Position numbers and translations under genes: made by a program. The notes below the pieces were generated by a model. The model was not told the DNA's origin. It searched no databases and saw only the letters and a program-made list of their open reading frames with translations. Positions 1-21,867 of a DNA stretch of 33,227 nt are shown here, piece after piece (positions within the stretch are counted from its first letter, which is position 1; every line of letters begins with the position of its first letter). Source of the stretch: Lenisia limosa (lineage: Eukaryota; Protista; Breviatea); NCBI GenBank assembly GCA_001655205.1, contig LPNZ01009898.1:1-33227 (forward strand), given 5' to 3'.

Positions 1-1484
1 AAGTTGTGTTACAGAGTTCTTAGGCAAATGATTGGATGGAATAATAATAATATGCTACAATTCAATGCCTCTTAGAAGCGTGATGATGTGGACGGCTTCA
101 GCTCAAACCTTGTGTTTTCTTATTAGAATATACTATATCATATAATACATGTATGATGGGGTGTTGTAAGCGAAGTTATGCAAATGGGAATATCAGCATA
201 TGATATTTTGCACTTATACTTTAGGCATAAACAAAGGAGAAAACACGGGACTCAACTCGTTTTACTCTGGCACAGTGGGCGCTGCGAGACAGGTACGGGG
301 TTGGGTCGTCGTAGTGGAATTGCAGTAATATATAATTTTCCGCTTATTATGAAACCAAGGAGCCAACATTGTGCTGCATGATTAAATACGAAAAATTAAC
401 TTTTAAAGGCAACAATTCATGGACACAAAGCAATGGCGATTTCTCTCAACTTCCCCTCAACTGGAGGTTATCACGGAGTATGGGCTGTTCCGTTTATTCG
501 CAGATCTTGACATTTGTGACTACCCCATCGTCATATATTTAATTATCACAAGAAGCCTTCAATAACAAACACAGGAGTGGCGATGGGATACAGCAAAAGC
601 AGTGGCAGGCAAGATCGTCGGTTTGTGGGCGTATCATTCACTGTAAACATAGTTGCATGACGTTACAATTCCTCTATGAAAGCGCTTCACCGTTCGTAGA
701 AGTTGGGCTGGACATTTCAATGCCAAGTGGTGCGATTGTTAACTTCACTATCCCGCCAGTAGCTCCAGAAAGCATCAAGGTGAGGAGGTTTCTTTCTATA
801 AGGACAAACCAATGACACTGCTCTCAACATCACATTATTATTTCCAGGGCTTCGCGGCAACACGTTCCGAATACACAGACTTTGAGAAGATGCGCGCGGT
901 CGAAGTAGAGAGTGAAGAGGTTAGTACAAGGCAAAGGGCCGCCCGCAAACCTGGGTACATCTGTAGATCGGTCCAGATCAGATTCAAATCAAAATAGGGT
1001 CATAATTGTCGGGTCTGTGGCCCCTGGTACAAGGACAGACCTGGCCTTTTTCTTTTTCAATATCTTACCTTCCCCTAGGAGAACGTGAGAGTGTTTCAAA
1101 TGAGGTATTTCACTCTGGCCCTGCCAACAACACATTGGAGGAAGGTGCTTCCCTCCCCGGAGCATGAGGAGGCTTTGATATCTTCGCATCTCCCTGTCAT
1201 TGCGGTGAGCAATATCTTCATCTCTTCGTTTATTCACTGTCACACACAGACTTTCCCTTCGTTTTTTTCTCTGTCACATGCATACTTCCCTTCGTTTATT
1301 CACCATCATATGCATAGGACGGAGAGGCCGTGTCACAGGGGATGATATCAGTCGGATGCCTCAGTCTCCTTCCTGACTCCCTAACTGGTTTGGTCTGCTC
1401 TTTCAGGTTCCCTCTAACAGCCCAGGACATGTGCACCTTTCAAAGTTCAATTTACCCGAACAATGGGGACCAAGGGAAGAGTAA
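1..1484 (+). CDS. surE: SurE-family 5'/3'-nucleotidase / acid phosphatase, multi-exon, 5' end outside the window
   Basis: Exons 225-292, 409-477, 575-620, 700-779 and 848-919 (all GT-AG, phases consistent) read GINKGENTGLNSFYSGTVGAARQ-ATIHGHKAMAISLNFP...KIV-EVGLDISMPSGAIVNFTIPPVAPESIK-GFAATR. This matches the SurE signature GINxGxNxG..YSGTVxAA and the downstream N(V/F)xIP...IKG...TR region. Later exons give GMISVGCL (cf. GYISITPL), with a stop at 1482-1484. Exons in 920-1330 are not fully resolved. Confidence 0.85.
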
Positions 1485-1752
1485 TCAATGGTGGCTTTGT
1501 TAGATTGACTGAAGAGGTCTGTTTCTGATATTATGTGTATGTTTGATACATTTGTTTGTATCCAATCATCATATTTCCATATTGTGTGTGAAGAAAGTTA
1601 TCAAAAACGTTGATACGATACATTTCTGAGCCCCTCACCCCGGGGTAAACTAATACTACTACCTACAAACTACCTACTATTATACAACTAAAGGGTGTCA
1701 AAAGGGACCTAGTGCGACAAAAGCAAAATTATACAAAATTGAGTGCGTACGT

Positions 1753-4700
1753 TTAAGGACGGGGTGGGAGGTCGGCAGAGCGCGTTACATCACCCTGTCC
1801 GACGGGGCCTGAGGGGTCTAGATGGATTGGGGGGCTGTAGCGTGAGGAGAGCTACTCAGAGCGTTTACAATTGAAGAGTATCACTGCACCCCCCCACTCG
1901 GACTCTCTACGACCCTCCATCCAAAGCGGTTCGTCATTGGTGTGCGTTAGCCTAAAACAATCAGTCTTCTCCAGACACAGTTCATTTCAGCTTTCGTCCT
2001 TCTAACATTATCCCCCCCTCCAGACCGTTGGCTCTCGCGGCTCTTGGGCCTGGAGGCCCAGGGGGAGTGGGTTGAGGGCGGCGCGGCCATTGTGTTGGCT
2101 CGACGGCGACGGGGGGCTGAATACCTGTGGCATGACAAAAGAGCTGAGCCCAAAAAAAGGGCAGCATTGCCTATCATATGTGGCATTGGTAAAATCACAA
2201 CCAGCGCATACGGTGGGGTGGATGGATTAAAGAGGTTGGATGAAACGGACATTGAAGAGACGGAGGAGAGACGGCGGGGGCGGACCTGATGTTTCAATTC
2301 ACAAATGGCTCATTACCTTTGGAGGGGGGGATTCTGGGCTATGGAAGCAAGCAATTCGAAGAGCTTTCAACCACTATACTGTCAGACATACCAATCGAGC
2401 AGACTTCCTGCTAAAGGTTCACGGACTTTATGATAACATGCAACCAACCATATCGAACTCGACTTCCTCTCTGGCATGCATGACAAGGCCCTTCGCCTTA
2501 TCCGAAGGGTCCGATGGTGTCAACTGCGGAGGTGAGCTTCTCAAAGGGGCAAATGGGCAAAGACGAGACAGTTCTTACTTGAAAGCAGAAGTTGCGTTTG
2601 TAGACTTGGTAGGGCACAGGAGCCACAAGCATGTTGTGAACAGTGACGCAACCCTTCTCAGTCATACCCTCTGACGACTGCAAGGTCAGCGCTGTTCACA
2701 GCAAAAGATTGAAGCAAATTGTAAGAGAATTGAAGAGTAAAATNNNNNNNNNNNNNNNNNNNNNNNNNNNNNNNNNNNNNNNNNNNNNNNNNNNNNNNNN
2801 NNNNNNNNNNNNNNNNNNNNNNNNNNNNNNNNNNNNNNNNNNNNNNNAACGTCTCTCACTTGTTGATGCTTGTAGTAGGTCAGAACACGGTTTTTGAGTT
2901 CAAACGTGCGAATCTTCCAATTCTTAAACCTGAGTCGTGAGGAACAAACTGTTTTGAGAAGAGATAACTTCATCAGAGGAAAAGGAGCCAGGTCCCACCG
3001 TCCACGTGCTAGTTTGGTCAGCATCCCCTTGAGAGCGACAGCCTCGGGCTTAATCTCAATGTCATCCAGGTCCCTACGTGGGTTAGTCATTGAATGTCAA
3101 CAAAGAAAATGGGGTGCTTTGAGCCTACTCATTGTTCATCCACAGCGACTCGGCATCACTGTCAATCTGAAGACATGAGTATGTGTTGTTGTTTCATACA
3201 AAGCTTCATCCAGTTTATGGCGAGAAATGGGCATTCAACAAACTAAGGCGTTATACCTCAGGGCTAGCCATACATGTCCTGGGGCTGGGCAAGTCCGGCG
3301 TTGTGTCCTCTGTTTGGCACTCCGCATGAACCTTCGGAACTCGCCTACTAAAAATGTTAGGGGTTGTGGAAGCCAACAATGTGACTGCATACCTTCTAAC
3401 CCTCTTTCTTCTGTTGCCTTCACCGTCGCTTTCAGTAACACGCTGGTCCGAACCAGGCTCAGTCTCTCCATCACTGTCGTCTGGAAGCGTCCGGGGGTCT
3501 GGAGGAGTGAGAATGGCGGTACACCGGATACGTCAAGGACTGCCCGCACCTTCGGTCTGAACGCCATCATCCTTCACGGCCTTCTTGCGGGCGTCAGCCT
3601 CAGCAATGGCTGTTTCGGCCACGGCGGCTGCTCGAGATGATTCAGCTGCCGCATTGACTGCTTCGACCCTGCACTATTACAATGCTACGTGCAATTTGGA
3701 ATATGCGTTTGTAATCTTCCATTTTTAGGCAATATTTCTGAAGAAGAACTACTTAATTAAAAGCGTGTTCCCTTCTAAAGGTACTATGTCACCCATCAGA
3801 CCTTGCCTGTTCATGGGATGCCGCCTCAGCAGCAGCCAGCACCTGCAGGGCAACAGCTTCCTGCTTCGCACTGGTGGCTTTTTGCTTCTCTACAGTAATC
3901 TCCTTCTCCATTGACAACAGAGCTTCTTCCCTTTGGTCGAGTTCGGACTGTCGCGTCATCAAAGACGCCTCCTGTTCAGCAACAGTCTTGGACCTCTCAT
4001 CAGCCTGGGGTGGTGAGCTGCATTTAATGTTGCCCCAAGGCTTCACAAAAGTGCCAAACATCGAGAAATTATTGATGAAAGCTGTTTCTATATATTTTGT
4101 AACAATGTAACATTCTATGATGGTGAAATGCAAACTTCATTTAGCAAGCTATTTGCGGATGTGATTATTTCGGCAGCTTCTTTCTTCATGTCGTTGATTT
4201 CTTTTTCCGATTCGGCCTGATGAATTAAAAAGATGGATAATATCAAATATAACGAGAGACAATGCAGTAGATAATTGTAAACTGCAAGACAAACCTGTTT
4301 GTCTTCCAATTTTGCCTCAAGTGTACTGCAGCGCAACTCACGGTCGGAAAGGGCTTCCTCTCTAATTCCAAGTGCATTTTCAGTTTCTTTTGACTCATTC
4401 TCAAGAGATTTGATGTTTTCTTCTCTTTTCTTTAGAGCCTCGGAAAGGCAGACGATTTCAGCCTCGCGGTTGTTGAGGTCTTCATGCCGCTCTTCAGCCT
4501 GTGAAGTGTTAAAAAAAAAACCAGCAGAAAGGGATTACTCATCAACCATAGTTGTTGCATAGTATAATATATCATATCCCCGTGAAAAGATGACCCATCG
4601 CACTTCGAATGTTTTGTCGGTTGCAGCTTGGTGGAGGGAGTCGGCCTCCTCCTTCCGAGCGCTGAGATGGGCAAGCTTTTTCTAGAGCGTCAATACAATT

Positions 4701-7700
4701 TCATGAAGAATTTCTCCCCCCCCCCCCCCCNNNNNNNNNNNNNNNNNNNNNNNNNNNNNNNNNNNNNNNNNNNNNNNNNNNNNNNNNNNNNNNNNNNNNN
4801 NNNNNNNNNNNNNNNNNNNNCAGTTTCGACTCCGCTTGGGCGGTCTGCTTGGCCACAGTTTTCATCATATCACTTGTTCGGGCCTCTCGATCGTTGATGG
4901 CGTCCTCCTTGGCGGCTACGAGCGCCTCCCTTTCGCAAAGCTCCGACGTCTTATCCTCAAGGTCAACAGTCCTGGCATCAAGGGTGGATTTGCTGGCATT
5001 CAGGGCATTCTTGCGGATCTATAATACATCAGTTGAGAGATGTTATTTCGGTATGATGATTTTTGCAGCAATTCAAAAACTATAATTGTCAGATTTCTAT
5101 GATTCTGAAAACAGTACCTGGAGGGCGTCATCGAACTCTTCCAGGGCTTCATTCCGTTCATCTTGGTCATTGGCACGCTCACTCAAGACCTCTGTTTGAA
5201 GATCTATCTCTTGCTGAAGCTGTCCGAGACGGATGAGTTCCTGTGCGTTGTCTTCTTGGTTCTGTCTGTTTACCTCAGCTTGTTTCGAAAGGGCTTTTTC
5301 CTTTTCAGAGCAGTCTTCCTCTCTCTGTACAAGTTCTTTCAATTCCTTTTCATTCTCTTCTTCCTTTCGCATAACCTCTGACTCTTTTGTGTTCAAAAGT
5401 TGCTCCTTCTGCATGTTCAATTCGGCTTTCTGCAAGTGTTCGTTGTTTGCTTGAGAAAGCTCTTCTTCCTTAACCTTTAACTCCTCCTCTTTATGGAATG
5501 CTGAATCCTCTCTGTCCTCAAGAACACATTCCCTCTGCAGAATAATATCATTCTTTATCTTCAAATTTTCTTCTTTCTTCGCATTTTCCTCCGAAACCTC
5601 CTTGTTCTTACCCTCAGATTCCTGAAGTACCTTCTCTTTCTGACTTAACATGACTTCCAGTGTTTGATTATCTTCCTTCTTCTTCTCCACTTCTTCTTCA
5701 TTCCTCAACAGTTTCTCTGTTCTCTCATCCAGATCAGCCTTGAGACAATTCAATTCTTCATCCAATTTTCCATTTTGTTCCTTCTTGGCTGCAGCAGCTT
5801 CTTCAAGAGTAGCGAGCTCTTCTTGCTTCTTTTGATTGCATTCTTCTTTTTTCCGAAGTTCTTCTTCCTTCGCCTCCAACGAAGCCTCCTTCTCTAAGCA
5901 AGACTCATTCATGAGCGCAAACTCTTCCTTCTCTTTTTCAAGTGCGTGCTTCTCTTCTTGCAGTTGACGCTGAGTACATATAAGATGTTCAGAGCTTTTG
6001 AGGTTCTCATTTCCCTTTATTTCATTTTCATTCTCTTTTCTTTGAACTTTATCTTCTTTTCCTGCCAATTCTGTTTCTTTCTTCTTCAGTTCTTCTTCTT
6101 TTTCAGCAACCTCATTTTCTCTATTCTGAATACCTGATTGTCTGAGAGCAAGGTCATTTTCTTGAGTTTTGAGATCTTCAAATCTGTTCTTATAACCATC
6201 TTCCATTGCTGCCAACTCTTCTTCTTTGAGTTTCAATTCTTCTTCATTGGCCTCATTCTTCCTTCTGCTTTCCTCTTCTTTCTGTTCAAGAGAAATGGTG
6301 TCATTCTTGAATGTTTCTTCTCGTAAGTGCAGCTCTTCTTCTTGCATCTTCTTCTTATCTTCCCAATCATTTTTCATCCGATTTAATTCTTTCCTCTCTA
6401 CTTCAAGCTTTTCTTCTTCCTTCTTTAATTCTTCCCTACTTGCTTCTAGCTTTTCTTCCGCTTCCTTCAATTCTTCTTTTTCAACTCGAAGATTTTCTTC
6501 TTCATTCTTCAAGTTTTCCTTATCTGCTCGCAACTTTTCTTCTTCTTCCTTCAATTCTTCCTTATTTGCTTGCACGTTTTCTTCTTTCTTCTTCAATTCT
6601 TCCTTAATCTTTTGCATCTCTTCTTTTTCTTCCATCAATTCTGCCCTTTCTGTTGCAAGATTTTCTTCTTTCTTTTTCATATCTTCCCTCTGTGCTTCAA
6701 TCTTTCCTTCTTCATTCCTCAATTCTTCTCTATGAGTTTTCAGCTTTACTTCCTCCTCCTTCAACTTTTCCTTTACAGTTTGAATATTGTCTTCTTCCTC
6801 CTTCAACTCTTTCCTCAGAGCTTCAAGCTTTTCTTCTTCCTTCTTTAATTCTTCCTGATTTGCTTGAAGCTTTTCTTCCGCTTCCTTCACTTCTTCCTTT
6901 TCAAATAAAAGCTTATCTTTTTCATTCTTCAAGTTTTCCTTATCTGCTCGCATCTTTTCTTCCTCTTCCTTCAATTCTTCCTTAATTGTTTGCAAGTTTA
7001 TTTCTTTCTTGTTCCATTCTTCCTTAATCTTTTGCATCTCTTCTTTAACTTCCATCAATTCTGCCCTTTTTGCTGCAAGATTTTCTTCTTTCTTTTTCAT
7101 ATCTTCCCTCTGTGCTTCAATCTTTCTTTCGTCATTCTTCAATTCTTCTCTTTGAGCTTTCAGCTTTACTTCTTCCTTCGTCAACTTTTCCTTTACAGCT
7201 TGAATATTGTCTTCTTCCTTCTTCAGTTCTTTCTTATCTGCTTGCATTTCCTCTTCTTCCTCCTTCAATTCTTTCCTCTCTGCTTCAAGGTTTTCTTCCT
7301 CCTTCTTTAACTTTTCCTTTCCAGCTTGAAGAATGTCTTCTTCCTCCTTCAACTCTTTTCTCTTAGCTTCAAGCTTTTCTTCTTCCTTCTTTAATTCTTC
7401 CTTATTTGCTTCAAGTTTTTTTTCGGCTTCCTTCACTTCTTCTTTTTCAACTAGAAGATTATCTTCTTCATTCTTCAAGTTTTCCTTATCTGCTCGCATC
7501 TTTTCTTCCTCTTCCTTCAATTCTTCCTTAATTGCTTGCAATTTTTTTTCTTTCTTCTTCAATTCTTCCTTAATCTTTTGAATCTCTTCTTTTTCTTCCA
7601 TCAATTCTGCCCTTTCTGCTTCAAGGTTTTCTTTTTCCTCCTTCAACTCTTTCCTCTCTACTTCAAGCGTTTCTTCTTCCTTCTTCAATTCTTTCAACTT

Positions 7701-10700
7701 TACCTCAAGCATTTCTTTCCCCTGTTTCACTTTTTCTTTTTCAATTTGAAGACTTTCTTCTTCCTTCTTCAATTCTTCAATATCCGCTTGCATCTTTTCT
7801 TCTCCCTTCTCCAATTCTTTCCTCCGTGCTTCAAGCTTTCCTTCTTCCCTCTTCAATTCCTCATCCTTTCGATTAAAATCTTTTATTCTTGTATCTTTTT
7901 CATTGTCAAATTCTTTAGTTTTGAAAGAAAGTTCTTCTACCTTGGAAGCAAGATGAGATAAACTCTCCTCAAGCTGTTCAACGTTCTTCTGGTGCTGGGA
8001 TTTGTTGTTCTCCAGTTCCGCGCTTAACTGGGAGTTGTTTTGAGCTTTTAAGACAAGATCTTCTTCTTTCTTTGATAGTTCTTCATTTTTTAGCTGAATA
8101 TCATCAGATTTCTTTTTCAGCTCTTCCTCCTTTTGAGCAAAAGCTGTGTTTTGGTCAAACAGTTGAGAGATCTTTTGTGAAAGTTCTTCTTGACTTACAG
8201 ATAGAGCCAACTTTGCTTTCTTATGTAACTCAACACTCTCCAAGTGAACATCTTGCTTTGATATTAATTCAGCTTCTTTTTCGAGGAGTTTCTTTTCTCT
8301 TTCTGATAATTCATCTGCTTTTGTGGAATTATCTTCTTGCATCTGCTTCAACTCTAGTATTAAGCGTTCGCTTGAAGCTTCCTTCTCCATCAGCTCTTCC
8401 TCTCTTTCTTGACATTGCATTTCAAATGTCCCCTCCGTCTCTTCCAATTTAGCTTCACGGTCATCAGCTGCGGCCATAGCATCAGCCAGGCGCTGGGAGA
8501 GAGAGTCAAATTCGGAGGTTCTGAGTTCCAACTATTAAGTGAGAAATGATTGTCCCCAGATAAATACTTCAAAAAGCAAAGAAAGAGCAGCCACCACATG
8601 TTTACAACATCAACAAGGACAAACCTTCGATCGTTCATCACGTAGCTCGGCTGCTTTTGCTTCAAGTTCCTGCATATATTAGAGCCACAATTGATTGCTT
8701 GGTGCAATTGTGTTTATATTGTTTGTTTATTTCATTTTTTTAGATAAAAATAAAAAGATAACACACACTCCCACCTTGGACTCAAGGTTCAACCCTTTTT
8801 CTCGAGACTTCAGAGTTTTCTCAATTGCGGAACACTCTTCAACCTTGGCATTAAGATTTTCAGTTGCAGCTGATAGAGATTCCTCAGCACTTTCAACAAA
8901 CAGAAGTCGTTCAGCCTGGTCTTTTGAGGAGAGCTCTGCTTCGTTCCTTGCAGTCTCAAGCTCAGCTGCTGCCTCTTGTCTGTCAGTCTAAAAGGGTAAC
9001 AACGCTGAGTACTTGAACTAACGTGAGATTAGAGGATAATCTTATTGGGCAATTGAATGGATTAAAAACTGATACATTATCCCCACACCTCCCCAATCCA
9101 TCACCTACATAATTATATATTCTTGTAAGTTCATTTCCATAGGGGGTTCACCCCCCCCCCCNNNNNNNNNNNNNNNNNNNNNNNNNNNNNNNNNNNNNNN
9201 NNNNNNNNNNNNNNNNNNNNNNTTCAGCTACTGCCTGTAGTTGCTCAAGTCTCTGGGACATAGTCTCCAACGCTACCGATGTTTCTTCAGCCTTGACCTG
9301 TGCCTCGAGCAGCTCTGAACTTTTGACTGAAAGAGATTCCTCCAGAATACTGGCAGCAGCTTCGCGATCGCCAAGGTCCTTCTCACGACTTTCAAGAGCA
9401 GAAGCAGAGTGACGAAGTTTTGTTTCTCTTTCTGAGAGTTCTGACTCTAGGGTGACAGAGTTGTCTTCTCTTGTTTCAAGCTTCAAAGACTTCAGGTTAA
9501 GGTCCTTTTCGAGTTCAGTTAGCTCCTAATACGATTAGAAAAAATTTAGGCAAATTCTGGAAAGATGTTGCCGAAAAGAATAACTGGAGCAACACAAACA
9601 GACCCCTCAGGTACCAACCGAGTCTTTCAAAGCGAGATGGGAAGCTTTGTTAGTTAGTTCATCAAGCATTTTAGCAGCTTCGGCCTCGTGGAGAGTAGCT
9701 TCTTGGTTGAGGTCCTCAGCCTAGTGATGTCATATGAACAAATATCTTAACTAAGATGGTTTTTTATGACATGGGTATCACCTGTACAATTGTTCAATTA
9801 ACTGTACACAATGATTTAATAACCCCCACCTCTGATTGAGCCTTATCCAACTTGGCTTTTGACTCTTCAAGATCAATTAACTTCATTCCAAGGTCAGAAC
9901 GAAGTTGAGAAACAGATGTCTCGGTTTCACACATAAGCTGTGCAGCTGATTTTTCAGCATCTTGTTTGGTTTTATCTGTTTCACTTTCAGCATCCGATCG
10001 AAGTTTTGCGCAATAGTCAACAGCATCGGCGATCCTCTGATCACAGTCAGCTTGTGCTTTCTTCAACTTGGCCTCAGCATCTTCCAGATTACAGGTGGCT
10101 TCATGGCGCATTTCCATAAGTTCCTCCCTCTCTGACTCTAGTCGGTCCGATTCCACTGAGAGCTCATTTCGAATTCGATAAATTTCCTCCTTGTCCCTGT
10201 CAATGTCCTCACGGTCATAGTCAATGCGGTCGGAAAGGATCTGAAGGCGCTTCTGTTCCTTCTCGTTTTTGGCGGTTTGTTTATCAACTGAATCTTTTCG
10301 ACTTTCTGCATCCTACGTGTGTTAAGAAATCAAGTAATAAAAAACGCATTTTGATATAATATATTATATATGCAGATATTACAATATATGATATCGATAT
10401 ATACTACTAGAGTAATTCTCTTACCAAGCAGATATCAAACATAGCTTATCATCAAACCTTCAGATACACCTCAGCAAGTTCGTTAGCTTCCTTGGCCTCT
10501 ATTTTGAGCTTCAGAGAAAGGTCGTGATTTGATTTGGCTTCAGAATTCAGAGACTCAGTTTCCAATTTAAGACGATCAGTATTTTGTTTGAGCTCATCTA
10601 ATGCGGCTGTGTCTGCAGCGACCTTCTGAATGTGTTCCTGAACTTCTTGACTGTGCTTACTTTGTGACTGTTCCAGGGTCTTCTCCTTGTCAGAGAGAGC

Positions 10701-13700
10701 CAATGACTGTGACATAAGAGCTTCACTTTGTTCATCCTGGCTCTGCCTTCTTGAATTTAGGTTCTCTTCATTTGACTTCAGCTGAGACAATTTCGCCTCC
10801 AAGTCAGTAAGGCCAGCCTTATGCTCATCAAGTTTCTTCGTGTGCTCTTCTTCTCGGTGAGACAAGTCAACTTCATTCGCTTTATTGCTTTCTTCCCTCT
10901 CAGCAAGCAAATGAGACTGCTCTTCAAGTTTAGACAATGCTATTTGAGCGGCAGCCATTTTTTCATCTGACTCTTTACTCAATCGAAGAGCCTCCTGATG
11001 TGATTCGGAAGCAGATGCCCTCAGCGACTCAGCCTCTGCTTGCATAACCTTAACCACTTCTTCTGTTTTGAGAGCTTCAGTAAGACGAGATTCTTTGTCC
11101 ATCTTGGCAGCTTCTATAATGCTCTGAGCCTCAAGAGAAGCTTGACATTTTGAATCTTCAATTTCTTTCTTCGCTTCGGTAATAGCTGCTTCAGCTTCTT
11201 CTTGAGTCTTTGCAAACTCGGCCTTGTGTTGTTCAAAAGCATCAACAGAACATTGGTGCATGGATTGTCTCTCAACTAAATCCTCTTCCTTCCTTTTGAT
11301 GTCTTCGAGCATAGTGTCAATGTCATCAAGTTGTTTCCTAATATCATCCTTTTGGATTGCAGTAGCTTCTTGAAGGGATTTGATTTCCGATTCACGGGCC
11401 TGAGCATCAGCTTCGCGTTCATTCATTATTTCAAGAGCCTTCGATAATTCAGTATCGCGTTTCTCGGCTTCTTTTTGACGACTAGCTAAAACTTCTGCAA
11501 TTGTGTCGTTCTCTGTTTTTCTCTCAATCACCTTCTGGGTATCTGATTCAAGAGATCTTTTCAACAGTGAACAAGCCTCGGACGAAACAGCAAGGGCTGT
11601 TTCTCTTTGAGCTAACATTTCTTGAGCAGCAACGAGAGCCAGAGATTCAGCCGCATGAGATTTCGCCTTCTGCTCGAGCTCTTGAGATTGCACTTCCAAG
11701 TCCTTCTCTTTTTCTGCAAATAACTCTTCCTTCTGAAGGTTTTCAATCTTCTTGAGAGATACCTCTTCCTTTTGAGCTTCCAGTGCTGTTTGATACTCAG
11801 TCAAAGATTGTTTTTCAGCATGTTGAAGTTCATCAACAGCCTTTTGTTCTTCCTTTTGGGTGTCAAGTGTGACGCGTAGTTCTTCAAGAGTTTCAACGTC
11901 AGTGTTAAACGCTGCAATCTTCTGTTCCATTTCCTCAGAATGTGACTTATATTCTTTTTCCTGGCGTGTCAGTTCAGATTGTTTTTCATCCACAGTATGC
12001 AACTTTTTTGCATATTCTTCTTCCTTCAGAGCTAAGATGGCTTTGGTAGCATCTATCTCCGCAAATTTCTCTTCACTCTCCTTTTGCGATGCATCAAGAA
12101 TGACCTTTGCATCTGCAAGGTTCAATTCAAGCTCTTGAAGGTCTGCTTCCTTTTCGATTTGGGCAAGATTCTTCTCCTCAAAGGCAACTTCATAAGCTTC
12201 CAGTGACACTGAGCGTTCGCTCAACTCAACCTCAAGAGCTTCAAGCATCTTGTCCTTCTTGTTTTGGCACTCTTTTTGATCTTCTAAGGTCAAACTGAGA
12301 TCAGATAATTCAGCCTTTCGACGTGAGAGGTCAGACGCAAGTTCAGCAATGTCACTATCCTTTTCTTGAAGCTCAGCTTGGAATTGCATCATTTCCCCCT
12401 CTTTAGTTTCGACATCTGCTTCCCTTTCAGAGATCTCCTGATCCTTTTGCTCCAGAAGGGCTGCTTTACTCTTTAGGTTGTCGTTAAGGGAGTCAATCTC
12501 GGATCGTCTTGCTGAGAGAGCATCGGAATTAGCAATGAAATCGGCTTCTTTCTCTTCAAATGCGGCTTGTTTGGCAGTCATCTCAAGTTCTGATGAGTTG
12601 AGCACAACGAGTCTCTGGTTCAACTCCTGCTCTTGGTGGTGTAAACGGGAGCTGAGGGCATCCATATGCTGTGATTTTTCAGCCAATTCTGATTCAAAGG
12701 AAACAACCCGCTCATCAAAAGCAGACTGTGATCGCAAAAGCTGCTCTTTATCAGACTCAAGCTTTTCAGTTAAATCATTGAGCTCTTTTTGACCCTGAAG
12801 AAGGGTGGCTTGAGCTTCGTTTAATAGAGCAGTATTTAACCTCAGCTCTTCATTGGCATCATCAAGTTTGCTTTGTTTCGCTTTGACTTCAACTGATTGA
12901 GATGAAAGCTCCTCTTGATCATTCTTCAATTGGACCTGAGATTCTTCAAGCTGTGTTGACGTATCGCGAAGGTTCGCAGATAGAGACTCAAGTTCCTCTG
13001 ACTTCGCGTTATTGGCAGCAACTTTAGTGGCAAGAACTGCAGCCGAAGCAGTCATCGCAACTGCAGCAGTGGCAGCAGCAGCTTTCTCCATATCAAAAGC
13101 AGACTTCTTTTCTGCATAATCTTTTTCATTAGCAGCCAAGGTAGCTTCTCGTTCATCAGCAGCTAATTTATCTGATTCATACTTCTGCTGGTCTTCCTTG
13201 AGCTTTAACTGAGCAGTACTGAGTTCACCTTGATCAGAAGCAATTTTATTGCGGATTTCCAGAAGCAATTCTTTTTGTTTTGACAATTCTGCTCCCTTCT
13301 CTTGCTGTTTTTGCTTGGTTTCAGTCAGTTCCTCTTGTAAATCATTCAATTTTGCTTCAGATTCAGCAAATTCATCTCTAGCAAACTGCAGCTCTTGCTT
13401 CTCATGAGAAAGCTGTTGAGCCTCCTGAGTATGGGTTTCTTGCTTCTTCTTTAAGGCAGCTTGTACATTAAAAAGATCTTGGCGTGACGACATGAGAGCA
13501 TCTTGGTTGCTTTGAAGAGTGTTTTGAGCAGTTTCAAGCTCTGCTTGGTCCTCAGCAATTTCGACCTCCTTTGAAGTCAGAACATCTAAACGAGATTGGT
13601 AGGACTCCTCAAGTTCCAAAAGATCAACACCACGTTGTTTCACTGTCTCCAATTGAGAGGCAAGGCACTCCGTCTTTGCCAGCAATTCGGATTCCTTGGT

Positions 13701-16700
13701 GACTATCTCTTGTTCACGGGCAACTAATGCTGCAGTATTTGTAGACAGAATAGACTCGCGTGCGTCATAGTCTTCAACATCTTTTGTCAACTCATCTTGG
13801 TCAGCTTTCAACTTCTCACATGCTTCAGCAAGATCAGCAGATTGAATGTCCACTTCAGTCTGTTTTGCAGTTGATGCCTCCAAGGCTTTGAAGGCCGCAT
13901 CAGAGTGCTGCTGTGCAAGTTCATTTCGTTGAATGGTATCAGCCTCCAAAGTTTCAAGACGGGTAACCATAGCATCAATCTAGATCAGTCATAAAAAGGA
14001 ATATAATATGTGATAGAACACTGGCGTTTACTAGTTTTCCTTTATCATACCTCAGAGCTACGAGTTTCAAGAGTTCGTTCTTTCTCAGCGACAACCAAGA
14101 GATTTTGGCTGACTTCTTCTGTCTTCTCTTGAAGAGCGGCTTTTTGTATGTCAAGATTCTCCTGTGTTGTCTGTTGCTTAGAAGCTGTTCCGTCTTGCTC
14201 AAGAGTTAGTTCGTGAAGCTCCTTATCAAGTTCACTTAGGCGACTTTTCTCTTGGTCGACTTCGGCTAGCTTTTGGTCAAGTTCCGTCTGAGATTTCGCA
14301 GCAGCTTGCTGTAATTCTTCTGCTCTGACCATAGTTAAGTTGGCATCTTGAGTCAAAGTCAGGGCTAAGGCCTTCAGCTTCTCAGCCTCGTGTAGAGCTG
14401 TCTCGGCTTCCTGCTTTTGGTCAGCAGCAAGGGCTTGGAGTTCCATTGCTTCTTCCTAAAATAACATCATTTGTTTTTTTTTTACCCATCATAAGTTATC
14501 AAAATAAAACAGCAACAGCACCTTTCCGCTTGATGATAATAATATATAATAGTATTCAAACTACAGCTTCAGGCAGTCTCTTTTGTATCTTTCCTCAGAG
14601 CAAACCTGGGAAGACAATGCAGCACTTTCCTGAGCAGAAGCCTTTTTCATGGTCTTTTGAGCCTCCTGTGCGACAGAATTCATCTTGGCTTCACGCTCAG
14701 CAATAGATTCATTGTTAGCCTTGACACGGGAGTTAGCAGCTTGTACCTCCTCCTCAGCAAGTTGGACTCGCTCTTCTGCGTGATCTTGGGCAAGTCGGGC
14801 ATTTTCCTTAGCCTCCTCAGCCTCACTTCGACTCACGGCCGTGGCTTTGGCAACTTCAAGTTCGAAGTTATTTAGACGCTCCTGTAGGGTTGAAAAGGAA
14901 AACAGATACTTGCTTTTTTTGCAAACCACAATCATTTGGCTAACCTTTAGAGTTCGTTCCATTTGAAGAACACCACTTTCACGGATTTCAAGATCCTCTG
15001 TTTTCTTTAACACTTCATCAATAGTGGCTTGAAACTCCGCTTTTTTGGCCATAAGGCTGTCCTCTTCTGCCCGAAGAAGTTTGTCTTTCTGAATATGTAT
15101 GAAAATTGGTGTGTTTGGACTGGATGGTAGTAGAATTCAGCAATATCGTATGATAAAAAAAATAGAGATACGAGGGAACCGATATAGATGATACCATCCC
15201 CATCGACTACCTCAGAATTGCAAGCTTCTACAATCTCCATTTCATCACGAGTTTGTTGGAACTGAGAAAACTTCTCTGTAAGCTGTTGAAGCCCTTCCTA
15301 GTATGATGTCAATTAACATACTCTCTTAGTCTTCAAAAAAAAAATCGATAAGAACCCCTGAAGGTGTTGTTTCATCCCACCTCAAGCTTGGCGGCTTCCA
15401 ATTCTGTTTGAGACTCCACGCTGATTCCGATCTGTGAAGCAAGGCTGAAATGGGTCAGTCTGTTCTCAAGACTTCACGTTTCTCTATGATATACAATAAT
15501 ATCAGATGGCATTATATTTTGCTGATGCTTAACCAACTCCCACCGTTTCAGCTCATCTCGTTCTGTTTTGTATCTCATTGCGGCTTTTTTCAATTTCGCG
15601 GCTTGGTTCTCAAGAGCTGCCTGGATATTGTAAATCGGTTCATAAAAAGAGGAGTTCAATAGGCAGTCAAAGAAGGAAGAGTTCGAAGGGATCAATGCAA
15701 ACCTGCCGGTCAGCTTCAGCAGGGGACTGGATATCTTGCCACTTGACAACCTCACCATCTAGCGCCTGCTTCCACACGGTTTCTCTTTCAGTCCACCGTT
15801 CTTGCCATTCCTACAAGGATTAACTGAATCTTGTGATACACCAAGTGAAGTGAAAAAAAGAGCGAGGTGTTCGATCCAACCTCTTCCCTGATCTTCCATT
15901 TTTCTTGGAGAGCAGAGTTTGAAGCCGTTTGCCACCTTTGCAATAAGAGATAAAAATATAATTTGAAAAACAAATTCCATGAACACAAAAATTCAGTCAT
16001 AACCCTTTTCTAGAAATCAAACTGCTACCACAAAATCTAAAACCAATGCTCACTTAGAAAGTGCATTTTCTGCACGAAGGCTTTCCAATGACTGTTCAAT
16101 CTGAAGTACTCTAAAACATGAACTACTTACTCAGTGACAAAGATGATGAATATGACACTACTCATCGGTATTCTGTTTTTTTTTAAAAAAAACTTAGATA
16201 CTACGTTATACTAAAACACAGGAAGAGAGGAATCCATAAATGAGACCCAACCTTTCCGTCTCATGGTCAAGGTCACTTTCAGCCCTGTTTGCTCTGAAAA
16301 AAATAGTGAAACTTGAGGAAAACAAGCTTTCTGCAAGACACATGTATACACACCTTTCAAGATGGACTTGAGTATTCTTCTGCTCATTTTCAAGTGAAGC
16401 CTGAAGTTCTTTCAGCCGAGAAGATTCCTGACGGGACTTGTCCACCGCTTGTTTGGTCACGTTTTGAAGTATGGTGACTGTCTCACGAGAATCGCTCAGA
16501 GCCTTCCGAAGAATCACGTTCTGTAAAATAAGCCATCCACTTCTAATAATGTTATTCCTTTACTTCGGAATGCCAATTACAAAACAAAAAAAAACGCAAT
16601 TTGCAGGATACCCCCCTCTCTCTCTCTCTCTCCACCTACCTCATTTAAGAGTTGCTTTGATTCCTCAGCAAGTTTGTTTCCAGATGGGAGGTTTTCAGGC

Positions 16701-19700
16701 TCATGAGGCGGACTTAATTGTGATAATCGTGTTAAAAAAATAGACAATGTCAGTTTAGCTTACTTTGGCTCTTCTTCAGGCTCGCTTAAGGACTCCGGAT
16801 AATAGTCAGATTCAACAGGGTCCTCTTCCATTGCAAGTTCTCGGGCATAGTCCGCTGTAATTCCTCCATCATCATATTCATCATCCTCTTCGCCATCTTC
16901 GAACTCCTCATCTGAGTAACAGTTAAAATAAAAAAAAACAAAGTAAAAATGAATGGAAGCCAGAAGACAGTACTGTAATGAATAAAAGACGATTCCCCAA
17001 TGATCTAACAAGCACCACGGCTAGCCAGTCATACCAAGCGAAGACTTCAACCCTATATACCTTAAGTCAAAATACCAAAATGTCAACAAGGATATAGTCA
17101 CACCAGTTTACTTTAGTCTATGATTGGGCAAATCACATGTGAGTAGCTTGAACAATCCGCATAGTGTATTACACCACTGTCAAACCCAAAAATTTCTCCC
17201 CTACTCATACCAAGGCTGTTGGTCACAGCGGTACTGATATCTGCGAAGAAAAGAGTGGCTGAAGTTTCTTCGAATGACTTGACCCACGGAGACACATTTG
17301 CCACCTGAAGGTCATTGAGTATGTTGATAATTGTATTGACAATAATAATATGAAAAGCCAGCAGAATCTGCAAGCAGAGAGAATACTACAAAACATCACG
17401 CATCAACCCTACCAGCCATGTTCGACCTTGACCTCCAAAAGATTTCTTCAAAAGGCTAAAAAGGGTCAAATACTGTTCATTGAAAAAAGCCCCCCCTCCA
17501 ACAAAGTCAAGTTTGAATCTCTGTAGTTGATATGCGCACGCTTGTTGCCCCGAGTTTTCGATGCTAAGTCACTAAGAAAGTAAGATGATGACGTTGAGAC
17601 AAACGGAAACGTTTTGAACAATATAATAGATTTGGTATATAAATTAATCAAAATGAATGAACAGCCCTAACAAAAACCCCTCACATTATCACTCTTCCAA
17701 GAAAAGACAGGGACATGTTGATAGCCTTTGCTTCTTGTCCTGAATTGCAATGAATTGGGCAACAACAAAAAGCCAGAAATGCATAACGGTTATTTAATCC
17801 AAGTAACAAAAACCCACGATCGGCCTTCTGAATGTCCTTCTCGCTCCCGGCTAGGATACCGAAGGTCAGAACAACCGTCTCTGGCTCGGGGCTAAGGAGA
17901 TAATATGTCATAAAACTGAACTGTTGACATTTTTTTAAAAAACACTCTGGAGTTTCTGAAAAGATGAAAATAATAAAGATATTAGAGCGTATCCAGATAC
18001 TACCCGATGAATACTGTTACTATATGATATGATTTATTGTTAACTAAAGATATTTGAACAGATACTCAGGAAACAACAAGCAATGATCAGCAATACACCA
18101 ATATGATACAATAGGGCGTCACAAAAGTCAAATAAAAAAGACTGAATTTTCTATTAATCCTTGAAAACTCTCGATATTTTATAGGTCTTTTTCTTAGGGA
18201 AGTGGAGCGTGACAGGCTCTCCCACCTTGTGAACTTGGTGATTGTAAAGTTGACAAGAGTGTGACTGCGTGAAGATGTGGCACGGCACCCCGCGTGGGCT
18301 GTGAGCGATATTAGGCTGAGATAAGTGGAAACAGTATAAGAAAGTAAAAAAATTATCAGAGACTTCTAAAAAACAGGAAACCGTTGTGAACACCTCGTAT
18401 TATCGACCCAAGAGCCCACCAGATTCTCGGGTAGCCAGTGCGCTGGAGAGCATTGAACGCGAGTCGGCTGGTCCCTGAATGTGCACCCTGAATCATAAGC
18501 AATAAACATCACTCTTTGTTGATAAGAAACCAACTTGCATCATCTCAACCCACTAACTCCTGCAATCCGTCAACAAAGGGCCCCGTAATTTTGTTCTCTC
18601 GGATCCGTAGCTTCTTCCTTTTCGCCAATAAATCATATGGCTGGTCTTTGTATAGCTCCACTGCGCTGTAGAGAAGGTTATGAACAAACTTCATAAAAAA
18701 AACAAAGAGAAAATGCAACAGAAAAAATAATGAACTATTGAGATACCCGACGTCTCGATTTTCTTGATATGCAGTTTTGAGACACAACACAGCCCAAAAC
18801 AACACAGTTGCCCACCTTGCTGTGAGCATAATCCGACCTTCTGATCGATTGACCTGGGTTGTGAAGAGAATACAGGAGAACGCTACCATAGCAGGCCCAA
18901 TTTATCAAGTTTGTTCTTCCCACGCCTCTATCCTAGTACCATTTCAGCAAGTTGTACGGCGGCACGCGGGATAATGCCGAGGTCTTTTCGATTTCCAAAC
19001 ATTGTGTGCGTCTTGCCTCTGATACATGAGGGAAAATGGGAAATGAAGTACTGTTGAGCCTTAAAAAAACCCCGCCTACGCTCCAGTTTGACCGTATGCA
19101 AGAACAGTCGCAGGACACCCTGGTCAATTAACAGTTGACTCTTGTTGGAATGGATGTGTTTCCCAAATTTCTGGCAGAAGGCCCATTGTGCCCACCTTGC
19201 ATGACGGTTCTAATAGCCGGGACGCCAATGGCTGCGAAAAGGGACTGCTGGCTTCCTAAATCAGTGAAACATTGAAGCTGACACAGGATTTACCATTTTG
19301 CTCAGAAAAGACAGCATCAAATTGGAATGTTTTCCTTGGGGGTCTGTATGTCCGGCCAGGGGGCTGCTTAAGACGACATTGTCCGCCACTTTTCGGTACA
19401 ACTGGCGATCAGAAAGATTAAATAAACTCAGTATTAAGGAACAGGAATTTGAATGCGGAGAAAGAAATCAGTTGAGAGAGTGTCGGATCAACAAAGGCAA
19501 GGGAACCATAACATTCTTATTTTTGCAACAATTGTAAATATAATGCAGGAACTAGAAGGTTGGAATAAGGTGATACAAACGTAGCTGAACAAAGAATACA
19601 GATGAATATAACCTGAATATAACAGTGACTTGTGATAATTCTGCAATAAAGGTGGCAGTATGCGTGTTAATATAACAAAATATACACGAAAACTGGGAAG

Positions 19701-19863
19701 GAGCATTCAAAGGCGTACTTGTTGGTTTTCGAGTCCCATTCTCAGTCGGCAAATGAGGTCGAATCCGCAACACCACACGCACAGGTTCTAATACAAGCTT
19801 ATTTTGAGACCTAGCACTTGTTCGTGCGAGCTCCAGCCCAACGTTGCCGCTACGTGACTCCAT
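1753..19863 (-). CDS. Giant kinesin-like protein (~4,200 aa, ~52 exons): divergent N-terminal motor, acidic linker, ~3,450-aa coiled coil, PH domain, Pro/Arg-rich tail
   Basis: From ATG 19863, successive GT-AG exons join with compatible phases and no stop: 19863-19719, 19401-19294, 19255-19196, 19119-19080, 19018-18940, 18853-18816, 18665-18558, 18487-18420, 18298-18226, 17891-17818, 17739-17685, 17571-17503, 17455-17413, 17304-17211, 16911-16764, 16712-16640, 16520-16354, 16293-16252, 16110-16054, 15935-15881, 15810-15703, 15620-15544, 15444-15381, 15297-15211, 15088-14945, 14881-14606, 14455-14051, 13979-10458 (or 10470), 10312-9830, 9720-9619, 9525-gap, 8987-8775, 8669-8625, 8531-5118, 5018-gap, 4681-4604, 4498-4295, 4216-4136, 4004-3802, 3668-3550, 3498-3393, 3344-3257, 3166-3129, 3073-2999, 2929-2860, 2677-2579, 2523-2449, 2373-2317, 2285-2212, 2124-2026, 1951-1898, 1834-1753. 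Two exon ends are hidden in N-gaps, and the last 2-3 exons are less certain. Confidence 0.8.
2335..3035 (-). other. Pleckstrin homology (PH) domain encoded by five small exons
   Basis: Spliced: ALKGMLTKLARGR-FKNWKIRTFELKNRVLTYYKHQQ-SSEGMTEKGCVTVHNMLVAPVPYQVYKRNFCFQ-LTPSDPSDKAKGLVMHAREEVEFDM-WLKALRIA. This shows the typical PH beta1/beta2, LxYY, KGxI/V, F.F.L and a C-terminal helix with the invariant Trp. Confidence 0.9.
2744..2847. other. Assembly gap (N), inside a PH-domain intron
   Basis: N run. Confidence 1.
4731..4820. other. Assembly gap (N) hiding a kinesin-stalk exon end; flanked by poly-C
   Basis: N run. Confidence 1.
5118..8531 (-). other. Giant coding exon 2 (3,414 nt, phase 0-0): K/E-rich coiled coil containing the tandem array
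   Basis: Acceptor taatag|TTGGAA at 8531 (the ORF-track 'M' is a TTG Leu); donor CAG|gtactg at 5118. Confidence 0.9.
6372..7841 (-). repeat. Coding tandem repeat: 35 x 42 bp (14 aa, consensus about EKLEAxKEELKKEE) with higher-order units of 546 and 420 bp
   Basis: The landmark tccatcaattctgccc (RAELME) recurs at 6631, 7051 and 7597, giving spacings of 420 = 10x42 and 546 = 13x42. Distinctive monomers (MRADKENLKNE, IEAQREDMKKKE, DNIQxVKEKL) recur in the same order. Confidence 0.92.
9162..9222. other. Assembly gap (N) hiding a kinesin-stalk exon end; flanked by poly-C
   Basis: N run. Confidence 1.
10458..13979 (-). other. Giant coding exon 1 (3,522 nt, phase 0-0): non-repetitive E/L/A/K/S/Q-rich coiled coil
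   Basis: Acceptor ctag|ATTGAT at 13979; donor AAG|gtttga at 10458 (alternative GAG|gtgtat at 10470). Corresponds to ORF 10452-13970, whose M is an internal Met. Confidence 0.85.
16617..16632. repeat. (CT)n microsatellite in a kinesin intron
   Basis: ctctctctctctctct directly visible. Confidence 0.7.
17211..19790 (-). other. Kinesin motor domain (exons 1-14 of the giant gene)
   Basis: Spliced translation: PVRVVLRIRP...FQFDAVFS...VLAYGQTGAGKTHTMFG (P-loop)...DLGIIPRA...SAVELYKDQPYDLL...LRIRE...GPFVDGL...SSRSH (switch I)...LTFGILAGSE (switch II, degenerate)...EAKAINMSLSFLGRVI...HINYRDSNLTFLLKKSFGGQGRTWLVANVSP...EETSATLFFA. Confidence 0.95.
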
Positions 19864-20037: not shown

Positions 20038-21568
20038 ATGAAGATTTTAGTCAGCGTGAAACGAGTGATTGATCACGCCATTAAAGTGCGTATCAAAGCA
20101 CCGCTCGCTCCTGTGAAAATCATCACTGGTGGGTTACATTTTGGTCGCTTGAATTGGACATACCTTAGTAAATAATACTATTTTTGTCCAATAGTCTTTT
20201 TTTTCAATTATGAAATATCACTCAAATTTACCTCCTATTCAAATATTATCACATTAATACATTAATGTGTCAGTCTAAGATAAAACAATTACGAGGATTA
20301 CCTATGAAATGGTAACCCCACTAGAGAATGTGAAGCACAGCATCAACCCTTTTGATGAAATAGCTTTAGAGGCAGCTGTTCGTTTTAAGGAACAAAAGCA
20401 TGCGGATGTGGGTGAGTGTTAACATCTTCCCAAAATGAATATTTGACACAATTCTTCGCATTGTCTTCAGATTGAAATGCAATCTTTGCTTTCTAATATT
20501 AATCCAGGAGGTCATCGCAGTGAACATCGGACCATCCAAAGGTGCTGATCAACTCCGGTTGGTGTTGTCACCCTTTGTAGTTCTGATGGTATTTCAAAAT
20601 GGTGCTACTATAACCAAGCAGACATTCGATTGCAATGGGAGCAGACAGAGCTATCCACATTACAACAGATGACGATATTTTACCATTACAGGTCTGCTCT
20701 CTGATTTTTTTTTTTGAAAATTTAGTATTCCTCACGTGATTAAATTTGAATTAAATGAGATAGATTTCACAAGTGCTGGAGCAACTTATTGAAAAGGAAA
20801 AGCCAGACCTCGTGCTAATGGGAAAGCAATGTATGATTCGTGGTAAAATATATTGTCCCCAAATTTTTTGCCAAAAATGCCCTTTACAACTATTCAGCCA
20901 TTGATGGTGACAATGGCCAAACGCCGCAGCTACTTGCTGGAAGATTGGACTGGTCCCAAGGTGGGACATTGTGCCCTTATTGACACCCATCTTGTATAGT
21001 TTTACCACGATATCATGCAAGTCATATACAGTATAAAATATTACATTACGGGTTCTTGAATCTCTCAATTTACTATTTAGCAACTTATGCAGCTGCAATA
21101 GAATTCAAAGAGAGTAATTTGGTATGCCGGATAGCATTTGACCATTGACGATTAACCATAGATGAACGTTGTACGTGAAGTGGACGGAGGAACCGAAGTT
21201 ATTGCAGTACCTCTTCCAGCGGTTGTTTCATGCGACCTTCGCCTCAATAAGCCACGACTACCGAAGCTTCAAGCAGTTATGGTGCGGGACTTTCATTTCT
21301 TTCTTGAGGGTGGATTGGTAGCCTCAAGAAGAAGCGCTGACTGAAGTAGAAGGCCAAAAAGGCCCGTATTGAGTCAATGAGCTTTGAAGAGTTCCTGTGC
21401 AGCACTCCAAAGACGGAAGTGCTGGAACTGAGGAAACCGGAGGTGCGAACCGGAGGAGACAAATCTGCGAATGTTGATGCCTTGATTGCAACTCTCACAG
21501 AAAAGGGTTGGTTATGGTCAGGTAATAGTACCAAGCGACAGAGTTCGCCATATCCTTATCAAACATGA
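20038..21568 (+). CDS. ETFB: Electron transfer flavoprotein beta subunit, multi-exon
   Basis: [19 protein letters not shown] (20038), [118 protein letters not shown]: the conserved ETF-beta motifs in order. The exact 3' end is uncertain. Confidence 0.95.
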
Positions 21569-21867
21569 TATGGAAATATCTGCAGAAGTAGCAAATACTA
21601 TACATTTTTTTTATGATTATACGATATGTAGTACAATGAACAACTCCATTGCGGACATTTACGAATTTAGGACTTATTTGAACAACCAGACATCAACATC
21701 ATTGCAGTTTGCACACTATCATTTTCAGTTATCCTTGAATAGATGAATAAACACACTTTATTCGGGACTTGTGAATACACAAGCCACAATACCTCAGCGA
21801 GACACTAACGAGGGATGGCTGACACGAATCACACCTCACGTCTACAATATGAGCAAATGGCCAATCA

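Follow-up and report, generated by a model that had tools for sequence, protein, structure and literature searches.

The stretch of DNA analysed here (the window) comprises 33,227 nucleotides (nt) of contig LPNZ01009898.1 from the Lenisia limosa (Breviatea) assembly GCA_001655205.1. It is intron-rich eukaryotic DNA, and exons were placed by reading the minus strand in three frames, which yielded one giant gene whose coding region (1753..19863, minus strand) leads from an ATG at 19863 to a stop codon at 1753-1755. An initial annotation, made from the letters of the window, had proposed a single in-frame gene of about 52 exons and about 12,640 nt; in our independent rebuild, the gene is composed of 51 exons with zero internal stops, corresponding to a coding sequence of 12,609 nt and a protein of 4,202 amino acids (aa; 480 kDa, isoelectric point 4.8). 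The 50 introns measure 31-334 nt and are all of the GT-AG type. As the same annotation had anticipated, one continuous open reading frame (ORF) leads from a kinesin-like head through a rod of ~3,480 residues to a PH-like domain, the last recognized by motif. The model is backed by the exon table, the stop-free translation and twelve introns that are visible in RNA contigs. We propose that a single expressed gene encodes a kinesin-superfamily protein composed of head, rod and lipid-binding module, for which a role as tether or spacer appears likeliest, and we assign a probability of about 0.5 to this interpretation.

From the ATG at 19863 down to 14051, 27 hand-placed exons follow each other in frame and encode 918 residues with no stop. 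Beyond 14051, the chain continues with two large exons (13979-10470 and 8531-5118) and smaller rod exons, and finally with 17 exons to the stop. The motor exons were placed by hand, guided by kinesin motifs, since dynamic-programming chains miss many of them: an exon chain based on a rod-trained codon table dropped motor exons and several small exons and was rejected. Termination of the gene at an in-frame stop near 3535 was ruled out, as a 51-nt intron (3549-3499) is spliced in RNA; its removal takes out the stop between rod and PH region and thereby joins the rod to the downstream linker exons in the mRNA. Readings of the tail with an early stop (mini-exon 2410/2407-2392; acceptor 2338), which entailed two apparent introns in the untranslated region (UTR), were discarded as well, because one frame alone stays open across four RNA-confirmed junctions and the acceptor 2374/2373 restores the Trp of the PH helix. 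A scan for bacterial promoters and terminators upstream of the ATG was disregarded as meaningless for a eukaryote.

Two sequencing runs carry the locus, one of DNA (X1) and one of poly(A) RNA (X2; 47 million letters). X1 was classed as DNA because it also contains introns. A quarter of the words sampled from 1500-5100 is present in X2, and zero of the words sampled from 10455-13979, a range that includes exon 28. RNA contigs were examined over 1001-7000, and all 12 joints on the strand of the gene coincide with introns of the model, seven of the 12 having been predicted before the RNA data were seen. Minus-strand GT..AG joints were observed at 5117-5019, 4603-4499, 3549-3499, 3392-3348, 3256-3167, 3128-3074, 2578-2524, 2211-2125, 2025-1952 and 1897-1835. 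Moreover, an RNA contig links 4821 to 4683 across the assembly gap at 4731-4820, a nine-letter loose end of an RNA contig fits a 31-nt intron at 2316-2286, and the match of RNA contig 9 opens exactly at the exon start 2677 and closes exactly at the exon end 2449. Within 3000-3700, named in the initial annotation as the passage from stalk to PH domain, the four joints from 3549-3499 through 3128-3074 agree with the model. At the 3' end, X2 contig 8 ends near 1630, delimiting a 3' UTR at 1630..1752 (minus strand). RNA-backed introns are confined to the 3' third of the gene, and the 32 introns upstream of 5118, including intron 14, lie outside of the RNA cover. No single RNA contig spans the rod through the PH exons, depth being zero at 3801-4400 and 2801-3000. 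One mRNA would cover the full length of the gene.

The junctions outside the RNA-verified set were assessed with splice matrices trained on the 12 verified introns only. Background sites yielded median scores of 0.0 (donor) and -1.5 (acceptor), and the 95th percentiles were 4.0 and 3.2, respectively. The latter thresholds, taken from background GT/AG sites, were exceeded by 20 of 38 donors and 22 of 38 acceptors, with ~2 expected by chance. A branch-like YTRAY sequence is located upstream of 21 of the 50 acceptors, as compared to 14% of background AG sites. At the acceptor of exon 15, the first behind the head, both a pyrimidine tract and a branch-like TTAAC are present, and the phase of exon 15 agrees with that of exon 14 (1 and 1). 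As exon 15 is open and clearly coding (acidic run) for 27 codons ahead of its first Met, an upstream coding exon is needed. Very short introns are among those confirmed by RNA (31 nt at 2286-2316, 45 nt at 3348-3392, 51 nt at 3499-3549 and 55 nt at 2524-2578), and introns of 38 nt and 47 nt are predicted in the motor region. At position 5153, an RNA contig has C where the DNA has T (plus strand), equivalent to A to G in the mRNA and changing AAT (Asn) to GAT (Asp). The change, which appears in a single contig at 36 nt from the contig end, could represent an allele, a strain difference or A-to-I-type editing.

Three assembly gaps fall into the gene. All of them are closed by contig NODE_255 of ENA ERZ3820729 (L001; 33,087 nt, no N), which was found through the product of its 1,172-aa ORF and is identical to the window at every exon base. 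The gap at 9162..9222 contains the donor GTAAAT and the start of intron 31; the exon ends exactly at 9223 and no coding sequence is lost. The gap at 4731..4820 has a true size of ~45-47 nt and comprises the last 27 nt of exon 34, i.e. nine in-frame codons, followed by the donor GTAGAC of intron 34. These two gaps had been named in the initial annotation as places that might conceal a stop or a mis-join; L001 contains neither. The third gap (2744..2847; true size 99 nt) lies wholly within intron 44 (2859-2678), amid the PH-coding region. A Logan DNA contig of run X1 crosses both gaps in its reach, with 47 letters for 4731-4820 and 99 letters for 2744-2847. For L001, the public collection lists prokaryote-style ORF calls only (14 products of 36-1,172 aa, without Pfam match), and for this reason the giant gene is not visible as a protein in the databases searched. 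A homopolymer of 11-15 G (gene strand) is directly adjacent to two of the three gaps (4716-4730 and 9151-9161), and the third conceals an 11-G run, seen in L001 at 21121-21131; the gaps would seem to stem from failed sequencing or assembly at poly-G tracts and not to mark real joins. At position 2683, within the pyrimidine tract of intron 44, the X1 contig and L001 have G and the window has A, which is a small assembly or allelic difference.

The head (17211..19863; exons 1-14, aa 1-358, net charge +25; this and all following protein features are encoded on the minus strand) was identified by colinear exon-level matches to the Pfam family PF00225 and by matches to kinesins in the PDB. Five exons or segments align in order with profile positions 87-110, 126-168, 190-212, 250-266 and 272-285, scoring 20.4, 23.0, 11.6, 10.3 and 12.1 bits, respectively. 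These scores sum up to ~77 bits, each alone staying below the cut-off of 29.3 bits. The N4 motif RxRP is present as RIRP (aa 33-36; 19756..19767), and the P-loop GQTGAGKT (aa 114-121; 19009..19093), which is interrupted by intron 4 (19079-19019), fits the consensus GQTxxGKT. Switch I reads RATSSRSH (aa 228-235; 18261..18284), that is, SSRSH is retained and the first Asn of the NxxSSRSH motif is replaced by Arg. In switch II (aa 259-264; 17840..17857), an Ile (codon ATC) occupies the position of the Asp in DLAGSE, resulting in ILAGSE, and no second stretch coding for LAGSE was detected in the scanned motor region (17-20 kb). Further head motifs in the spliced model are GIIPR, INMSLSFLG and HINYRDSNLTFLL. 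Loop 12 is represented by SKTRGNKRAH followed by INYRDS and contains four basic residues and no poly-Lys insert.

When single exons were compared with the PDB, the best kinesin matches of exon 7 were KIF13B, KIF1A and KIF14, all belonging to kinesin-3, and those of exon 5 were KIF22 and CENP-E (E 0.047 for CENP-E). A family placement on this basis was rejected, the matches being weak (E 0.007 to 0.9) and scattered over KIF22, CENP-E, KIF13B/KIF1A and KIF3C. Judged by its motifs, the head belongs to the kinesin fold family yet probably stands outside the active motors. In P-loop NTPases such as kinesin, myosin and G-proteins, the switch-II Asp positions Mg2+ for hydrolysis, and its loss should cripple hydrolysis and spare the binding of nucleotide and microtubules. 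Because ILAGSE takes the place of DLAGSE, we consider the head probably inactive; it would more probably act as a static microtubule binder than as a working motor. The earlier view that the protein is not an ordinary cargo motor fits this loss of the Asp.

An acidic linker (16676..16911; aa 359-420), starting with DEEFEDGEEDDEYDD, follows directly after helix alpha-6 of the head at the usual place of neck linker and neck coil. It contains neither a neck coil nor an FHA domain. Its net charge of -25 offsets the charge of +25 of the head; the PH-like domain and the tail carry +8 and +6, respectively. Speculatively, this acidic run, which resembles a tubulin C-terminal tail, could mask the microtubule-binding face of the head. 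The larger rod and linker exons (15, 17, 25-27 and 28) gave no match to any Pfam family, FHA included, in keeping with the absence of FHA stated by the initial annotation.

The rod (3497..16675; exons 16-40, aa 421-3897) was delimited by a proline map and a heptad score. Its 3,477 residues include one single proline (P569) and are made up of 21% Glu, 12% Lys, 12% Leu and 11% Ala, and the heptad score is 0.39 as compared to 0.21 in shuffled sequence. At 0.1485 nm per residue, the extended rod would measure 516 nm, i.e. ~0.5 micron, which agrees with the span of ~500 nm estimated previously. Within the rod, a tandem array (6385..7859) is composed of 35 copies of a 42-nt repeat (14 aa, two heptads), nested in 3.5 copies of a 420-nt unit. 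Its ~490 aa keep a single unbroken heptad register, in which one core position is Leu, Met, Ile or Val in 99% of the cases and the other is hydrophobic in just 40%; for the latter reason, the array may in part form a weak coil or a single alpha-helix. In 6400-7000, i.e. within the array, the Logan DNA contigs are broken into pieces of 84-172 nt and their summed depth is raised to 47-79 as compared to 36, which makes the repeat copy number in the assembly uncertain. An AlphaFold2 monomer model of exon 28 (mean predicted local distance difference test score 54) is, at low confidence, mostly helical, is folded back on itself and is uninformative on the oligomeric state. An exhaustive search with the 1,175-aa exon against 1.84 billion representative proteins returned six matches (best E 1.3e-9), all of them generic coiled-coil proteins with unrelated domains, so that no specific homologue of the rod was found among these representatives. 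No relatives were detected in the JGI metagenome scan, the viral-contig scan or the ESM Atlas either.

Downstream of the rod, a Pro/Asp-rich linker (3129..3498; exons 40-42) contains the polybasic run RRKRVRSRR (aa 3926-3934) and is framed by the four RNA-confirmed introns between 3549 and 3074 listed above. It leads to the PH-like domain (2338..3045; exons 43-47, aa 3985-4093, 109 aa), which was recognized by motif reading; RNA contig 9 is consistent with its exon edges 2677, 2579/2523 and 2449. PH domains are characterized by G-x-L-x-K in strand 1, W-K-x-R-x-F-x-L in strand 2, L-x-Y-Y-K in strand 3 and an invariant Trp in the C-terminal helix. Indeed, the spliced model has KGMLTK and WKIRTFEL for strands 1-2, LTYYK for strand 3 and a helix FDMWLKALRIA with the conserved Trp, and strands 1-2 bear the phosphoinositide signature K-Xn-K-x-R (TK...WKIR). 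On the strength of these motifs, the assignment as a PH domain is very likely correct, and the region would adopt a PH fold and bind lipids. The C-terminal tail (1756..2337; aa 4094-4202, 109 residues) is Ser/Arg-rich with 19% Pro, contains RRLSS and PRRRR, and is encoded in the one frame that is open over four RNA-confirmed junctions. A CaaX box is absent from the C-terminus, the protein ending with ...DLPPRP.

Several known proteins share parts of this architecture. Kinesin-3 proteins (KIF1A/UNC-104/Dictyostelium Unc104) likewise combine an N-terminal motor with a C-terminal PH domain that binds phosphoinositide membranes, and are marked by a Lys-rich K-loop in loop 12. The giant protein differs from them by lacking FHA, poly-Lys K-loop and neck coil, by the loss of the switch-II Asp, and by a rod that is roughly ten times longer than their short stalk. 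CENP-E (kinesin-7) resembles it in that the N-terminal head is borne by a flexible coiled coil of great length, which serves as a long-reach tether to microtubules. However, CENP-E is an active, farnesylated motor of ~2,700 aa with a stalk of ~230 nm and a C-terminal region binding kinetochore and microtubules, whereas the Lenisia protein (4,202 aa) shows a degenerate switch II, carries a PH-like domain and lacks a CaaX box. The longest well-studied kinesins that we are aware of are CENP-E (~2,700 aa) and plant POK2 (~2,770 aa); the protein described here goes well beyond both and joins a probably inactive head, a giant rod and a PH domain, each of which is known separately. A functional analogy may be seen to LL5-beta/PHLDB2 and golgin-type tethers, in which a long coiled coil bears a membrane module at one end (PH in LL5, an anchor in giantin); these have no kinesin head and reach microtubules through partner proteins. 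No sequence kinship of the rod to LL5/golgin-type tethers was found, its matches being generic coiled-coil ones only. Immotile or pseudo-kinesins (kinesin-11 KIF26, yeast Vik1/Cik1) also employ the kinesin fold as a microtubule binder without productive ATP turnover. Unlike the giant protein, in which most of the pocket is intact, Vik1 has no nucleotide site at all, and neither Vik1 nor KIF26 has a giant rod or a PH domain.

The closest counterparts, compared by description, are the kinetoplastid X family and Naegleria proteins of KISc-PH type, including TbPH1 and TbKifX2C, which share an N-terminal kinesin or kinesin-like domain, a coiled coil, a C-terminal PH domain and the lack of FHA. KISc-PH proteins without FHA are listed for Naegleria, Leishmania and Trypanosoma (Wickstead et al. 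2010, PMC2867816, Additional files 3 and 6), and fusion of PH to a kinesin motor was inferred to have occurred at least twice (Wickstead et al. 2010, PMC2867816). In T. brucei, TbPH1, a 110-kDa protein on the microtubule quartet, combines a motor that is probably dead with a coiled coil and a PH domain at the C-terminus, TbKifX2C comprises a motor and a C-terminal PH domain, and Vik1 has been cited as an analogue of TbPH1 (bioRxiv 10.1101/2021.09.29.462327). The claim of the initial annotation that the architecture is unlike any described kinesin therefore fell: kinesin-PH proteins without FHA are already described (PMC2867816; bioRxiv 10.1101/2021.09.29.462327), and the novelty lies in the scale and in the degenerate switch II. 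With the architecture matched by description and the PH domain by motif, the predicted protein is a very large variant of the kinesin-like PH type. The head of TbPH1 is judged catalytically dead, as is probable for that of the giant protein, and TbPH1 resides on quartet microtubules beside the flagellar pocket membrane. The two differ in size (110 kDa vs 480 kDa) and in the site of degeneration: TbPH1 has a degenerate Walker A motif (G93P, T/S95R), whereas the giant protein has an intact Walker A and a degenerate switch II. TbPH1 moreover carries a homeodomain-like fold after the PH domain in place of the Pro/Ser/Arg-rich tail and is partnered by the active kinesin KifX2A.

These features suggest how the protein might work. 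The basic head, in which RxRP, P-loop and SSRSH are intact, would probably hold nucleotide and bind microtubules; with Ile at the position of the switch-II Asp, static binding or very slow cycling appears most likely. The near-proline-free, very acidic heptad rod would reach ~0.5 micron if extended and probably dimerizes. At the other end, the polybasic run, the PH-like domain and the Pro/Ser/Arg-rich tail with its basophilic kinase sites could together attach the protein to a membrane. The likeliest role would be that of a long, regulated tether or spacer connecting microtubules to a phosphoinositide-bearing membrane. We infer a dead or slow ATPase, dimerization and the tether role. A precedent is provided by TbPH1, an inactive-head kinesin-like PH protein positioned on a particular set of microtubules next to a membrane. 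We see an even chance that the protein is a static microtubule-to-membrane tether or spacer. As a tentative and more specific version, a rigor-type pseudo-kinesin head might be locked on a particular microtubule array such as a flagellar root, and a largely rigid dimeric rod together with the phosphoinositide-binding PH end would set or sense a fixed distance from this array to a membrane, the acidic linker and the basophilic phosphosites of the tail switching the attachment on and off.

If the Ile in switch II were tolerated or compensated, the protein could instead be an active plus-end-directed motor for membrane transport, a very long-stalked kin of kinesin-3 or of the KISc-PH proteins of kinetoplastids and Naegleria, whose PH domain picks up vesicles. 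An N-terminal motor with intact P-loop, RxRP, SSRSH and loop 11/loop 12 motifs, a C-terminal PH-like domain with lipid-binding signature, the kinesin-3 matches of exon 7 and the occurrence of KISc-PH motors in other protists would fit this idea. We regard it as rather unlikely in view of the Ile itself, the acidic non-coil segment at the site of neck linker and neck coil, and the lack of FHA and of a poly-Lys K-loop; furthermore, the exon-level PDB matches spread over KIF22, CENP-E, KIF13B and KIF3C, and a 0.5-micron rod is of no obvious use for the haulage of vesicles. A divergent mitotic or kinetochore kinesin of the CENP-E (kinesin-7) or kinesin-12 (KIF15/POK) type, whose rod would span spindle or cortex and whose PH-like fold would bind a protein, appears quite improbable: degenerate switch II is unlike that of active mitotic motors, the PH-like domain bears the lipid-binding K-Xn-K-x-R signature, the C-terminus is LPPRP with no CaaX box, and the matches of single exons, weak as they are (E 0.007 to 0.9), disagree with each other. 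For this possibility speak the very long coiled coils known from CENP-E and kinesin-12 types, the best PDB matches of exon 5 (KIF22 and CENP-E), and two motifs, HINYRDS in loop 12, which we take to be CENP-E-like, and LTFLL...GG, presumably kinesin-12-like. Kinesin-12 POK2 is reportedly a long kinesin associated with a membrane site.

Several points weigh against the tether reading. The 5' 8 kb are without RNA cover and the link between motor and rod is an in-silico chain only; intron 14, which separates motor and acidic linker (17210-16912, 299 nt), obtains middling scores (2.6 for the donor and 0.7 for the acceptor); of the 27 exons placed manually upstream of exon 28, just 14 were recovered by a splice-and-codon dynamic-programming model that had been trained on the rod; and the junction of exons 8 and 9, just upstream of switch I, can be read in two ways. 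Closure of the gaps is not fully independent, since L001, X1 and the window may share reads, and the agreement of L001 and X1 is read-level continuity, not an independent sample. Exon-level Pfam and PDB searches for the PH fold remained blank, the domain being split so finely (five exons of 19-33 aa each) that such profile searches are blind to it. The rod could fold back or be partly single alpha-helix, and inactivation by loss of the switch-II Asp leans on general knowledge of P-loop NTPases. A further alternative is that the locus contains more than one transcription unit, a kinesin-like gene (exons 1-14) and a rod-PH gene, or that its main product is headless owing to an internal promoter driving a rod-PH isoform, the full-length chain being an artefact. 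RNA was seen only from ~7000 down to 1630, intron 14 is among the longest and has modest splice scores, and a flexible exon search can often chain same-strand neighbours in frame. However, the spliced frame has no stop that would close the motor part, exon 15 with its pyrimidine tract, TTAAC, agreeing phase and 27 coding codons before the first Met requires an upstream exon, and each junction that could be tested by RNA agreed with the model. The absence of 5' RNA fits the 3' bias of a small poly(A) library on a 12.7-kb mRNA. Split units are unlikely, and motor and rod quite likely form one polypeptide.

If they do, a kinesin fold would serve as the static anchor of a ~0.5-micron tether with a lipid-binding module at its far end. 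The little-studied kinesin-like PH class represented by TbPH1 would then include a member from a further protist lineage that is about four times as large. The protein also provides a test case for the way in which cells establish long microtubule-to-membrane distances; separately tagged ends should be resolvable by ordinary super-resolution microscopy. The outcome also includes a complete, gap-free and partly RNA-validated gene model at a place where prokaryote-style ORF calling yields 14 pieces.

Two neighbouring genes were noticed. A plus-strand gene at 1077-1533, which has GT..AG introns at 1204-1316 and 1387-1424, runs towards the giant gene in convergent orientation and is more highly expressed; its RNA contig has a depth of ~44 as compared to 2-7 for the latter. 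The transcript ends of this convergent pair (~1533 and ~1630) are roughly 100 nt apart, and the loose end at 1533 of the RNA contig of the plus-strand gene is Illumina adapter. Upstream of the kinesin ATG, divergent exons resembling electron-transfer flavoprotein (ETF) are located at ~21160-21570 on the plus strand; the segment 21162-21341 yields a weak Pfam match to ETF (PF01012, E 0.009), and the next open segment resembles the C-terminus of ETF-beta.

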